Source of the DNA: Octopus sinensis
Lineage: Eukaryota
DNA length: 64,000 nt
Assembly: GCF_006345805.1 (NCBI RefSeq)
Contig: NC_043001.1
Span: forward strand, 27,218,001-27,282,000
Reading direction: 5' to 3'
Numbering within the stretch: position 1 is the first letter of the stretch; each line of letters opens with the position of its first letter. Below are positions 659 through 63,889 of the stretch, in pieces. Both the position numbers and the translations under genes were made by a program. The notes under the pieces were generated by a model. The model was given only the letters and a program-made list of their open reading frames with translations, was not told the origin of the DNA and made no database searches.

Positions 659-691
659 TGTAATAAAAGGGGTCCCGCTCCAAACACAACG
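659..691 (+). CDS. Mosaic gene, 33-nt micro-exon (CNKRGPAPNTT), phase 0-0; the gene continues upstream of the window
   Basis: CTAAT branch site, long polypyrimidine tract and ccag acceptor; ACG|gtaaga donor; joins in frame to exon 3407. Confidence 0.65.
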
Positions 692-3078
692 GTAAGAATA
701 AATATTAAACCCATTACATAAATGTTTTACATACTTTTAAGACTGGTGCATAGTCAATAATCCTGTCTAGAGTTTATGAAATATAAACTTCTATTCAACC
801 TTTTTTTAATTGGAAGTAAATCTCTTTACTAATACAATAATGAAATAAGCAAATGGAATACTAAATACATAAAATGGCAGACACAGAATGTATTCAGTAG
901 TATCAGGTCATACTGCTTGGTGTGTATGTATGTGCATATGTATATAGATATATATAGTTTGATAAGTGTCAATGCATGAAACTATGAAACTCTCAGACCT
1001 TGAGTTACTTTGCTACTTCTGCTAAATATTAATAAAATATACATATACTTATATTTTGAGTTCTATTTTCTTGTTCACATCACCATACCTGTATATATAT
1101 ATATATATATATATATATGTGTGTGTGTGTGTGTGTGTGTGTGTGTATACATATATGTATATATATATATATATATATATATATAATATATATATATATA
1201 TATATATATATATACAAAAAGCAATAAAGATTCAAGTTAATTTAAATGAATTTACTTGAATATGGTACCTAACTTAGATGCACCAAAACAAACTATACGG
1301 TTTTAACAATACAGTAATGTGGGGTGATTATAAGCGAGAAAAAAGCAACAAGAATGGATAGGTTTTTAGTACAATCGTTTCATACAAGGACAGGCTTTAT
1401 TAAAAGTTGCAAAAATTGCAGCATATAAACGTGTCCCGTACTCATCAGCTAAAATACATGTGAGTTCTCTAGACATCCTAGTGGTTGAGGCTATACTCAT
1501 GAAGTAATGTAGATAATTAAGTAACATAAACAGATTTCCAAAGTTCATTAAAGTTCTTTAAAGATGATGTACAGTCTTATCACAGAATTTTAAAAAAGTT
1601 TTAATAGCATCACAGAGAAGGTGACTTAATCCATAGTGTACATATGAACTTCCAGAGATATGAGGAGGGATTACATACTCACAGACGACAAATTTATCCA
1701 TTGCTAATCACAACGAGGTGGGTTTCAATTCCTGCTTATTAGTATTACAGAGAGGGTGAATTAATCCTTTGTATAGATGCACAATTTCCAATGGTGTAGA
1801 TGTAAATTTCCAGAGAAATGAAGAGGAATTTCATATTCACAGGCGATAAATTTATCAATGGTTGAACACAATGAGGTGGGTATCAATTCTTGCTATATGA
1901 TTAGGTATTTGCCACATTAATCATATTACTGCTATTTTCAAGAGACTGTAGCTATTTAACTTTTAAAGGCTGAAGGGCTTTCTGGAGAGGCAAAGAACAG
2001 AAAAGGGAAGGAAAGAGAAGAAAAGAGAGAAAATAAAGGGGGAGGGAGCAAAAGGGGGGGGCTAGAAGAGAAGAGAAAAGGAAAAAGAAAAAAAAGAAAA
2101 AGAGAATAAGAAGAAGAAAAAAAGAGAAAAGAGAAAGAAATAGGGAAAGAAGGGAAAAAAAGAAAAAGAAAAAAAGAGGGTTCTAGTTATACAGAAGAGT
2201 TAGTAGCCGGCAAGTCTGGTTTTAATTTACAGGCATCTAGGAACTAGAGGAGAATATTATTCTTTGACCAGTAAAACAGCTAATTTATTGCTGTCGAGAG
2301 CAGCTATGAATTTAAAGAGAATCTAAAGAGATAACACGGTCAGGGGTTTAGGGGTTTAGTGGTCAAAGGCTAAAATCAAAAGAAAATACATTAGGAAAAT
2401 CTAAGTATAATCTTATCAAAAAGTCATTAAAATTTATTTATTTATTTTATTCATTTTACTGTCTTAAGGAGTTGCCGTTATTATTCATACATTGACGGAC
2501 TACAGGTCAAATCTTAGAAGATCATTTACAAGGTGTTAGGGAATTGTCTATCATAATGAAGATAGTCATATTATCACCGAGGGAGTAGCCTTATTTATTT
2601 AATTTTGAAATAGAATTATGGGGCTTTAGTAACTCATTTTATTTTATTAAAGTTATGCTACTTAAATTAGATTAAGTTAAGAATTAAAATTAAAAATTAA
2701 AATTAAGATTTAAAATTAAGATTTAAAAATTAAAATTATGAGTTTGAAATTAAATAAAGCCTCAATTAAGCAGCGTATAAGTACTATTCATTTCCCTGTT
2801 CTCAAAAAAACTGATGCAGATATAAGGAAAAAGATAACTGTAGTGTGAGAACTCTTAGTTATCTACTTAAAGCAGTGCTATACTAGTAAAAATCAAGTAA
2901 TATCTATCTATCTAGTTACAAATATTCTAATCATTTAAAATATTTTAAAGTCTTCAATTTAGCGTGGACACAAACTTGACCTAGTTCGATATGGTTATTC
3001 AATAAGTTTCTATGTTTTCTATGCTTTAGAATTTCATACGTCTCCATATATATATATATATATATATATATATATATG

Positions 3079-3287
3079 GTAAGGCAGCTGCAGGAGAAAT
3101 ACCTAGCCAAAGATAAGCCCCTGGACCTGGCTTTCATTGACATGGAGAAAGCCTTTGACAAGGTCCCCCCCGATCCCTTATCTGGTGGTCAATGAGGAAA
3201 CTAGGGATAGATGAATGGTTAATGAGAGATGTGCGAGCCATGTACAGGGACGCCACTAGTAAGGTGAGGGTTGGCAACGAGTACAGT
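3079..3287 (+). mobile_element. RTE-type LINE reverse transcriptase fragment
   Basis: VRQLQEKYLAKDKPLDLAFIDMEKAFDKVP...MYRDATSKVRV; frameshifted. Confidence 0.8.
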
Positions 3288-3406
3288 GTGTGTGTGTGTG
3301 TGTGTCTGTGTGTGTGTGTGGTGTGTGTGTGTGTGTGTGTGCATGCGTGTGTGTGTGTGTGTGTGTGTAAAATATAAAAAATAATAAACTTTTCATTTTG
3401 TTTTAG

Positions 3407-3492
3407 CCTACACCTGAACCTGTCACTGAAGAAAATAATGTAACCTTTGCAAGAGCTGCCTTTTATGAACCTCTTGGCCACAGCAACATCCG
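3407..3492 (+). CDS. Mosaic gene exon: Pro/Thr linker ending at the start of the SRCR domain (PTPEPVTEENNVTFARAAFYEPLGHSNI-R), phase 0-2
   Basis: ttttag acceptor, CG|gtaaga donor; CG+G gives the Arg of the SRCR start motif IRLVG. Confidence 0.85.
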
Positions 3493-3552
3493 GTAAGATT
3501 GACAAAACATTCTCAGCCTTTTTACAGCTTTGAAAAGTTCACAAAATCATCA

Positions 3553-62004: not shown

Positions 62005-62113
62005 ATATAGTTACAACTACACGAGCTCCAGTTACAACTACACAAGCTCCAGTTACAACAACTCTTTCCCTGGACTGTTCAGATAATGAAATGTATTGTA
62101 CATCCACAAACAC
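62005..62113 (+). CDS. Thr-rich linker plus LDLa 6 first half (IVTTTRAPVTTTQAPVTTTLSLDCSDNEMYCTSTNT)
   Basis: tttcag acceptor; variant donor gtacga; 109 nt. Confidence 0.85.
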
Positions 62114-62445
62114 GTACGATAACTCTTTTTTTCTTTCTCATCCTATTAACCATCTTAATATTCATAAGCAATGAATATGTTTCTAAAGTACGTTATAAAC
62201 TAGGGGAAGAAAAAGCAAATCTGGTTATAATTTTATGAAAGGTGAACACATCTTTCTCTTACCTATATGTGAAAGTGTGTCTGGCTTCTCATGCAATGAA
62301 TTTTGCTCTTGATCACATACTAGAATAAATATTTTCTTTCATCACCTAGACAAAAAATATTTTCTTCTCAAAAGCCATAAATTAAAATACACACATAAGT
62401 ATTGCTTGAGTTGATTTCTATATGAACAAAATTTCATTATAACAG

Positions 62446-62516
62446 CTGCATTTTACTGAGTTGGAAATGTGATGGAGAAAATGACTGTCCAAATGGGGAA
62501 GATGAGAAAGATTGTG
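62446..62516 (+). CDS. LDLa 6, second half, identical to 56494-56564
   Basis: aacag/gtatgt sites; 71 nt. Confidence 0.9.
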
Positions 62517-63804
62517 GTATGTATAATAATTGAAATGATTTTAATTCATTATAAGTGGCTATATTTGAATTTATAAATATGATTATAACAAGGTTGTCAC
62601 AATTCTGTAACTGTAAAATCAATTATTATGTATTATTTGGGAAGGTAACTTACAAATGATAGAAAACTTTTCTCCCAGTTCTGGTCAAGCTTCAATGATA
62701 TGTAATTATGACTGATAAAGTATGCTTGAATTGTTTCACATTTTCATTCTATTGCTAATGATTGACAGCTTGTTTATTCAGACGTTTCTAAAGCATAAAT
62801 ATTTCATATTTTTCTTTTCTCCTTAAACACTTTATTTCAATGTCTTTCCTATATGTGATGTTTGCATAATACATAAAACCTTCTCTTCCTATCCTTCATT
62901 TCAAGCACATGGATTTCAGTAACAAAAATTTCCAGTTAGACTGGAAATCTCTTTTCCATAAGTGATATGCTTTAAATTGTTTTCCCATTTCATCTCAATA
63001 GTTTGCTGTAGATTGCTTAATAGTCTAAATGCGTGTCTGGGTGTGTGCATGTGAATCCATATCTATATATCTATTGTTCTGTCTTTTCCTGTTTTTTCTT
63101 TTTTATTTTTTTACTGTTTTGTTCTCACAGTTCTGTTCTTGTTACCACTTTCACCCTCCGCAAAAAATCCCAAATTTTATTTAAGTACTTGTAATAATGG
63201 GCAATCATTATCAAAAATGAGAAATTTACTTAAACAACAGGAATTTAATTCGGTGAAAGAAAAAGCAAGAAGACTCTCAGGCTGCAGAGACACAAAACAT
63301 AAACGCCACTTCATAGAAAGTTAAATATGGCCAATTTTATTTAAAATTACAAAAATAATCCTTGTAATTTTTCCTTTTTATGTCTACTGCAAGAAGCTGG
63401 CTTTGCACCCACATGGTTTCAGGTTCCATCTCACTACAGGGCATCTTGGGAAAGTGTCTTCCACTATAGCCCCAGCCCATCCATTGCCTTTGTGAGTGGA
63501 TTTCATTAATGGTTGGAAGCTAATTGTGTATAATATATATATGTGTGTTTATGTGTCTTTATGTTTGTCCCTCCATCAACATTTGACAATCGGTGTTGGT
63601 ATATCAAAGTCCCTGTAACTTAGTAGTACAACACAAGTAACTGATAGAATAAGTGAGGCTTTAAAAAAAAGAACTGAGGCCAATTTATTTCACTAAACTC
63701 ATCAAGCAGTGTCCCTACTTGACTGGGACACTACTTGACAGGTTTAGTCAAATGACTGAAACAAGTAAATGATAAAAGTTAAAAGATTTGTTTGACTATT
63801 TCAG

Positions 63805-63889
63805 TTATAGTTACCACTACACAAGCACCAGTAACAATTTTCCCTCTGGGCTGTTCAGCTAATGAAATGTACTGTTCAGCATCAAAGAT
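63805..63889 (+). CDS. LDLa 7, first half (copy of 57852-57936); the gene continues past the window
   Basis: tttcag/gtaaga sites; one substitution (AC to AT at the exon end) versus 57852. Confidence 0.9.

Follow-up and report, generated by a model that had tools for sequence, protein, structure and literature searches.

The window analysed here is a stretch of 64,000 nucleotides on the + strand of the Octopus sinensis genome (GCF_006345805.1, NC_043001.1, positions 27,218,001-27,282,000), at the locus of the RefSeq gene LOC115211767, and it carries a chain of 24 exons encoding a mosaic of SRCR, C-type lectin, kringle and LDLa modules. The explanation that best fits all of the evidence, and that we consider likely, is that LOC115211767 belongs to the Tequila/neurotrypsin family of mosaic serine proteases, that the modules of this family have multiplied in octopods, and that the gene in the window is a composite in which an assembly join has brought together parts of two paralogues, called A and B below. 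The window has no N gaps; its sequence is that of animal DNA, rich in AT and in repeats.

A preliminary description of this DNA, made from the letters alone, had placed 24 exons between positions 659 and 63889. All of them were located on the + strand within the same limits, each with a canonical AG acceptor and GT donor (Table 1), and the spliced product forms one reading frame that is open from end to end. The consecutive, compatible phases that had been proposed hold overall, except that the second SRCR exon fits only through a downstream AG at 12606-12607. Pfam searches on the spliced exons bear out the expected module content, with one SRCR (4e-20), one Lectin_C (1e-9), two Kringle (4e-37) and six complete Ldl_recept_a domains (3e-54), besides half of a seventh LDLa. 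The modules follow one another as SRCR, C-type lectin, kringle (K1), LDLa, kringle (K2) and then 5.5 further LDLa. Kringles are encoded by two exons of 119 and 184 nt (303 nt together) and LDLa modules by two exons of 52-130 and 71-74 nt (123-201 nt), and both kinds of module are in phase 1 at both ends. Later LDLa modules have Thr-rich first-half exons with an internal 21-nt (7-aa) repeat in one to three copies. Throughout the exons in use, open frames, all six cysteines, the acidic Ca-binding motif and canonical splice sites are kept. That the 24-exon mosaic is real, far beyond chance, is confirmed.

The 724 aa that the chain encodes from MDNTDC through its final exon are identical to residues 1-724 of XP_036359159.1, the 1445-aa "uncharacterized protein LOC115211767" on a 135.9-Mb scaffold of GCA_006345805.1. 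The internal-Met start of this RefSeq model leaves out E1, E2 and the first SRCR exon, all of which are present in the window. Beyond the window the protein adds a fifth Thr-rich LDLa and a PAN-like segment, followed by two successive LDLa-SRCR pairs and trypsin, and Pfam finds in the annotated product of the locus ten LDLa, two kringles, two downstream SRCR and a Trypsin domain (4.8e-63). The PAN-like segment (DYILDNFEKQ...) lies downstream of the window, and PAN_1 itself was scored by Pfam in the chiton homologue alone. The preliminary description had pointed to a similar module run, followed by PAN, SRCR and trypsin, in Tequila/neurotrypsin-like proteases of some arthropods, and had suggested looking for these domains downstream; all three are found in the annotated product. 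The Tequila-type assignment holds because this product runs on as PAN-LDLa-SRCR-LDLa-SRCR-trypsin, and the core order is the same as that of Apis SP23, the honey-bee protein corresponding to Tequila and Sp22D, which has been tabulated as CBD-SRCR-C-lectin-kringle-LDLa-PAN-2LDLa-serine protease (PMC1761132).

A chiton, gastropods, bivalves and nemerteans have full-length homologues under the names neurotrypsin-like or svh-1-like, and the matches in chiton, gastropods and nemerteans cover 88-94% of the query with E values of 1e-91 to 1e-131. The locus is an already annotated member of a known family, that of the secreted mosaic serine proteases Tequila/Sp22D of insects and neurotrypsin-like/svh-1-like of lophotrochozoans, and a literature search found no paper describing these octopus genes. 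The family would be an ancient bilaterian one with the core order SRCR, C-type lectin, kringle, LDLa, PAN, LDLa, SRCR, LDLa, SRCR, trypsin. Insect Tequila, Anopheles Sp22D and Apis SP23 differ from the octopus gene in having N-terminal chitin-binding domains, one kringle, one LDLa before PAN and no Thr-rich LDLa array. Vertebrate neurotrypsin (PRSS12) resembles the locus in its kringle, its SRCR domains and the trypsin domain at its C-terminus, and vertebrate and amphioxus neurotrypsins are significant matches, but they align to 12-13% of the query and have no C-type lectin, LDLa or PAN listed. A protease of the vertebrate PRSS12 type, with a kringle, three to four SRCR and the protease only, was therefore rejected as the identity of the locus, which has a C-type lectin, ten LDLa and a PAN-like segment in addition. 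Membership of the LDL receptor family, in which LDLa clusters are combined with EGF and YWTD beta-propeller domains, was likewise set aside, as Ldl_recept_a alone was found, with no Ldl_recept_b or EGF families.

Octopus possesses two paralogues of this gene, A and B, on one chromosome. Paralogue A, named "serine protease svh-1-like", is represented by XP_029655255 in O. sinensis and CAI9722755 in O. vulgaris; paralogue B by LOC115211766 (XP_036359156-8) in O. sinensis and by CAI9722758-60, "atrial natriuretic peptide-converting enzyme-like", in O. vulgaris. The O. vulgaris genome provides an independent comparison, being assembled from Oxford Nanopore Technologies (ONT) reads and annotated with Iso-Seq and RNA-seq, and in it A and B are separate genes, each with its own 5' half, with no A/B hybrid. 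In O. sinensis, paralogue A lies contiguously on VCDQ01000993.1 (here L001), an unplaced sequence of the same assembly, where it occupies 81.6 kb from the internal-Met start of the coding sequence, in the second SRCR exon, to the 3' end of the gene and lacks both K2 and the array. This gene contains a single kringle, one Thr-rich module and the protease motif GDSGGP, and its five LDLa before PAN include a type that is not in the window (GTTTNSSFTCPPGK...). With the window it shares the same SRCR, C-type lectin, K1 and LDLa1 exons and the same frameshift, and positions 2637-29600 are nearly identical to its 5' part. The exons E1 and E2, upstream of the SRCR exons, match O. vulgaris paralogue A at 11 of 12 residues (65-76) and at 29 of 29 residues (77-105), respectively.

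Paralogue B has the module order of the window, SRCR-CTLD-K1-LDLa-K2-LDLa-LDLa-(Thr-rich LDLa)n-PAN and onward, where CTLD is the C-type lectin domain, and in O. sinensis its K2, LDLa2, LDLa3 and Thr-rich modules are 100% identical in amino acids to those in the window. It differs from the window towards the 5' end: the exons there are its own and include a signal peptide, its SRCR is intact, and its K1 and LDLa1 are not those of the window. One O. vulgaris model of paralogue B has three kringles and its modules in a different arrangement; the third kringle is the K2 block repeated, with identical amino acids. Both O. vulgaris models (P0218, P0099) contain an orphan second-half LDLa exon after read-through sequence. 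The O. vulgaris array has either been rearranged as well or been misassembled.

The RefSeq name of paralogue B is derived from similarity, and its domain content disagrees with it. Corin was rejected as the identity of these proteins, since no Frizzled (PF01392) match was found in the annotated P0222 or P0220 and the true corins among the matches carry Frizzled. Corin is defined by Frizzled cysteine-rich domains together with LDLa, SRCR and trypsin domains and a transmembrane anchor; the N-terminus of paralogue B has a signal-like peptide.

Across the taxa compared, the number of modules differs widely. A chiton, two gastropods, the nemertean Tubulanus and a decapodiform-like transcript have one kringle and three LDLa, one of them before PAN, while the nemertean Lineus has one kringle and, by a motif count only, two LDLa. 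Argonauta and Octopus paralogue A have one kringle and seven LDLa, five of them before PAN, and Octopus paralogue B has two to three kringles and 9-11 LDLa. The proposed cephalopod expansion of LDLa and kringles is thus upheld, with 7-11 LDLa and up to three kringles in octopods against one kringle and three LDLa in distant molluscs and nemerteans; among the compared taxa, no distant mollusc has two kringles together with seven or more LDLa. The rise from a single LDLa before PAN to five would date to the ancestor that Argonauta and Octopus share. Gene duplication in Octopus may then have given rise to paralogue A, with one kringle and five LDLa before PAN, and to paralogue B, which would have dropped one LDLa type, gained a second kringle (one O. 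vulgaris model has a third) and enlarged its LDLa array with modules spaced by mucin-like Thr-rich linkers.

The duplicates in the window are graded in age, as had been suggested. The flanks of LDLa2 and LDLa3 are about 62-68% identical and the kringle blocks 86-91%, and the Thr-rich units range from 77-78% identity between two subtypes to 94-99% within a subtype. Most of the Thr-rich modules (T1, T', T5) have one-to-one orthologues in O. vulgaris. O. sinensis has an extra T' copy through the direct repeat of 5953 bp, and O. vulgaris has two middle modules and the orphan half module. Debris is also present. A dead Thr-rich first-half exon, A0, corresponds best to the first half of the first Thr-rich module of O. 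vulgaris paralogue B; the donor of A0 is lost exactly where the inverted segment starts, at a rearrangement junction, with an in-frame stop beyond it at 52536. The inverted unit, a 3.4-kb inverted repeat, contains a complete antisense LDLa module (first half 53444-53336, second half 53004-52934), and RefSeq splices from LDLa3 to 56031, skipping both A0 and the antisense module. A simple inversion of 52.5-56.0 kb was considered and rejected, as it restores no donor or partner for A0, and the structure was left as a complex inverted duplication. Each arm of the inverted repeat has a copy of an open reading frame (ORF) for a Cys/His-rich peptide of 73 aa (MHREFVKYTIYSISFCRECVKGY...), at 55567-55788 (-) and 59686-59907 (+); this ORF lies in the 2.5-kb spacer between array units and has no Pfam match.

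Some of the near-identical copies may be false duplications in the assembly. Carried further, this would make artefacts of the broken exon, the inverted unit and all of the near-identical Thr-rich modules, produced by false duplication of haplotypes or by fold-back reads, in an array that is in reality stable. In favour of this, the same assembly shows the suspicious A/B composite, identities of 97.7-98.9% come close to those possible between diverged haplotypes where the sequence is repetitive, and the O. vulgaris model of the array has its own odd orphan half module. We nevertheless consider it unlikely: the arms differ by 1-2%, in the number of Thr repeats and in amino acids, and so are not collapsed copies of one sequence; the module types T1, T2/T3, T' and T5 are common, one to one, to the independently assembled O. 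vulgaris gene; RefSeq isoforms use T1, T2', T3 and T4'; and the older layers of expansion, from one to five and then to 7-9 LDLa, are independent of the near-identical region. O. sinensis and O. vulgaris split about 2.5 million years ago. The array differs between these two species, and unless the copies are assembly errors its turnover is continuing. Of the repeated, ongoing expansion put forward in the preliminary description, the layering in time stands, while the near-identical copies cited for it include a broken exon, an antisense module and possible false duplications.

The view of the window as one evolving gene does not survive comparison with the paralogues, as a front of A type, reaching to LDLa1, is joined to the array of B. 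Against L001, window positions 2637-29600 show 14 substitutions and a few microsatellite length changes, and positions 28621-30005 no substitutions, whereas positions 30006-30976 show about 37 substitutions and many indels (about 3% divergence). A junction at the SINE (short interspersed nuclear element)-like repeat at 30975 had been a candidate, and the count of mismatches per kilobase moved it to 29527-30005. The following 9.9 kb (30976-40911) are missing in paralogue A and hold the SINE-like element, K2 and the two 1.47-kb tandem units; beyond this block the window is 89-97% like A, yet its LDLa2 and LDLa3 exons are of B type. The annotated protein XP_036359159.1 shows the same alternation: it is of A type as far as LDLa1, matches the LOC115211766 isoforms at 100% identity between K2 and the third SRCR, and returns to A type in its protease end, with AAHC, DIAL and GDSGGP. 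LOC115211767 spans 156 kb against the 81.6 kb of contiguous A. That the window locus is simply the "svh-1-like" gene on VCDQ01000993.1 was rejected, since LDLa2a and LDLa3 differ there and K2 and the array are missing. Neither LOC115211766 nor LOC115211767 appears in the listed neighbourhood of the other and gene-span arithmetic gave no decision; the evidence points to a K2-to-SRCR block present as two putative copies in the scaffold, not to exons common to both genes.

We read the gene in the window as a composite, in which an A front with its frameshift is joined to the K2 and LDLa array of B. The assembly was built from PacBio and Hi-C data, and the join is most likely a contig-level chimera or a false duplication, a very recent real recombinant being less likely. 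A swap in contig order during scaffolding was considered as its cause and is excluded: because there is no N gap, a contig-level chimera must be assumed. Several points limit this explanation. No N gap marks the junction, and the 14 substitutions in 27 kb mean that the two A-type copies are not literally one consensus, so that the second copy is possibly a real recent duplicate or a second haplotype. Moreover, the junction, the inverted unit and the 98.9% direct repeat are known from the assembled sequence alone, and a search for transcript-derived protein fragments spanning the LDLa1-K2 junction gave no octopus match.

LOC115211767 might instead be a genuine, very young hybrid, formed by non-allelic recombination between the A intron that follows LDLa1 and the B intron between LDLa1 and K2, with L001 as the unrearranged haplotype. 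The gap-free junction sits where A and B are about 97% alike, the A-type copies differ in a haplotype-like manner at 14 sites and several microsatellites, splice phases are compatible across the junction and RefSeq models join its two sides. Even so this origin is doubtful, since a 156-kb model that reverts to an A-type protease suits a B block inserted in an A intron better than a simple crossover, O. vulgaris is without such a hybrid, a divergence of 0.05% is very low for two haplotypes, and the frameshifted A front would yield no signal peptide unless a cryptic acceptor were used.

The frameshift lies in the second SRCR exon. From the first AG (12586-12587, exon start 12588) the exon gives the ancestral reading and then the frame breaks, as TATGGTTGGCAG (12619-12630) is one T short of the O. 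vulgaris sequence for YGLAE (...SRYGLAESEDF), a shift of 1 nt. The same T is missing in L001 (about 9990-10010) and hence in both O. sinensis A-type copies, and it is because of this frameshift that every A-type RefSeq product of O. sinensis begins at MDNTDC and has no signal peptide. The downstream AG, 20 nt on, keeps the frame and still scores as SRCR, so that an acceptor giving an exon start at 12608 is a candidate that would restore the frame. Given the near-identical sequence of the two copies, the missing T is possibly a consensus error common to both.

The second kringle had been taken as a duplicate within one gene; it is real, but it is not a copy of the K1 that stands beside it in the window. 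K2 differs from the K1 of paralogue B at 7 of 90 residues and from the A-type K1 in the window at 11 of 90, and because it is nearer to the K1 of B it was not copied from its present neighbour. Between O. sinensis and O. vulgaris, two of the 90 residues of K2 differ, and judged by these counts K2 is an older gain, specific to B, that predates the split of the two species. A reading of K2 and the Thr-rich LDLa exons as pseudo-exons, not expressed and strung together by predictors only through matching phases, is very improbable: although one exon is demonstrably dead and one module antisense, the exons in use are intact in frame, cysteines, Ca-binding motif and splice sites, K2 is conserved at all but those two residues, and the O. 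vulgaris models that contain K2 and Thr-rich LDLa exons were built on Iso-Seq and RNA-seq evidence.

Paralogue B, the true owner of K2 and the array, is probably a pseudoprotease and not an active enzyme, because its protease motif reads GDDGGP (Ser195 to Asp) and its activation site LVNE where IVNG is expected. The GDDGGP form is found in both O. sinensis and O. vulgaris (P0220, P0100, P0099, P0218), with the catalytic His and Asp kept. GDSGGP is retained in paralogue A, Argonauta, the chiton and the other checked homologues that match the motif, and one protein of the cuttlefish Acanthosepion matches neither form. With protease function putatively lost, the acquisition of binding modules becomes the point of greater interest in paralogue B. 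We propose, tentatively, that since the A/B duplication paralogue B may have been moving from a protease to a non-catalytic secreted ligand or scaffold, as suggested by the loss of Ser, the LVNE site, the two to three kringles and a fast-evolving, mucin-spaced LDLa stalk that varies between sister species.

HGF offers a precedent in which PAN and kringles are coupled to a catalytically dead protease domain, and among plasminogen, HGF and apolipoprotein(a) phase-1 symmetrical sets of kringle exons multiply by unequal recombination. Paralogue B appears HGF-like in combining PAN and kringles with a seemingly dead protease domain. The octopus genes differ from this group in gene lineage and domain order, and their growing module is mainly LDLa, with mucin-like linkers.

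Table 1. Exons, modules and rearranged segments located in the window
Feature	Position	Strand	Phase	Remarks
E1	659-691	+	0-0	encodes CNKRGPAPNTT; upstream of the RefSeq coding-sequence start; AG/GT sites
E2	3407-3492	+	0-2	encodes PTPEPVTEENNVTFARAAFYEPLGHSNI; splice sites read
SRCR exon a	5617-5751	+	2-2	RLVGNTSFYN...KQLGFS
SRCR exon c (second SRCR exon)	12588-12762 (first AG) or 12608-12762 (downstream AG)	+		
C-type lectin exon a	17059-17229	+	1-1	
C-type lectin exon b	19459-19554	+	1-1	
C-type lectin exon c	20974-21156	+	1-1	
K1 exon a	23184-23302	+	1-0	paralogue A type
K1 exon b and Thr-rich linker	26985-27168	+	0-1	
LDLa1 first half	28784-28844	+	1-2	paralogue A type
LDLa1 second half	29456-29526	+	2-1	paralogue A type
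Interval holding the A to B switch	29527-30005			per-kb mismatch counts against L001; LDLa1 exons of A type in amino acids
SINE-like repeat	30975-31640			left edge of the 9.9-kb stretch (30976-40911) missing in A
K2 exon a	31704-31822	+	1-0	paralogue B-specific; same in annotated P0220 and P0222
K2 exon b and Thr-rich linker	36165-36348	+	0-1	
Intronic tandem duplication	37207-40160			two units of about 1.47 kb, 98.9% identity
LDLa2 first half	42850-42901	+	1-2	B type; NISCNSDKMLCSVSSR
LDLa2 second half	44536-44606	+	2-1	
LDLa3 first half	48887-48938	+	1-2	B type
LDLa3 second half	50002-50072	+	2-1	
Dead first-half exon A0	52369-52496	+		Thr-rich; CPDNEMYCAATN; acceptor intact, donor lost
Inverted unit	52485-56021	-		reverse complement of 59011-59424 and 59447-62783, 97.7-98.6% identity
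Thr-rich LDLa module T1	56031-56564 (exons 56031-56160, 56494-56564)	+	1-1	
Direct repeat, period 5953 bp	56057-64000	+		56057-58047 = 62010-64000 at 98.9%; T1-T2' repeated as T3-T4'
Thr-rich LDLa module T2'	57852-58742 (exons 57852-57936, 58669-58742)	+		
Thr-rich LDLa module T3	62005-62516 (exons 62005-62113, 62446-62516)	+		first-exon donor GTACGA
T4' first half	63805-63889	+		second half past the window end; junction SASKIN, as in XP_036359159.1

The introns are rich in repeats and transposon remnants. Further copies of the SINE-like element lie at 1-302, 8899-9253, 24221-24418 and 50740-50898, and the copy at the left edge of the 9.9-kb block is only 30 nt upstream of the acceptor of K2 exon a. 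Each of the 1.47-kb tandem units contains an array of about 520 bp of ATG/ATC-type triplets, which gives long poly-Asp, poly-Ile or poly-Met ORFs depending on the frame. The remnants at 10567-12138, 14968-15765, 45927-46346 and 43239-43529 (-) are transposon-derived and comprise an RVT_1 reverse transcriptase with a Cys-rich ORF after it, two fragments of Mos1/mariner-type transposases (HTH_48, Transposase_1) and a weak fragment of an integrase core. Microsatellites are also present in the introns. A local palindrome at 21718-22086 carries identical ORFs of 54 aa at 21779-21943 (-) and 21861-22025 (+), and aligns in reverse orientation, at 97.8%, with its counterpart in L001. On L001, the gene next after paralogue A encodes a CDC27 domain (PF09507).

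The growth of the array may be explained by unequal recombination or replication slippage between repeat-rich introns, through which modules would be added, removed or inverted whole. Because every module between the lectin and PAN starts and ends in phase 1, such whole-module changes keep the reading frame, and growth of the stalk would follow from this symmetry together with the density of intronic repeats. By homology, the protein would be secreted, with a recognition head formed by SRCR, lectin and kringle, a Ca-binding LDLa stalk and a C-terminal part containing PAN, SRCR and protease. The Thr-rich linkers may serve as O-glycosylated spacers which, by making the stalk longer, set the C-terminal part farther from the N-terminal binding head.

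The locus offers a view of the classical phase-1 rule of exon shuffling at work in a living lineage, with three layers of gain, one old, one intermediate and one of roughly species age, and with the debris of growth still visible: an exon that is dead, a module in antisense and a half module left as an orphan. In the O. sinensis reference, LOC115211767 should be flagged as probably chimeric between two paralogues, which matters for counts of domains and gene families in cephalopods. Were the A/B join real as well, O. sinensis would possess a newborn hybrid in which the B array has been recombined with an active protease domain. In other animals this family has been connected with synaptic and immune functions, and Octopus now provides a testable case, a protease paralogue that has lost the catalytic Ser and gained binding modules. 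If the proposed shift of paralogue B is true, it would parallel the transition from plasminogen to HGF at an early stage.

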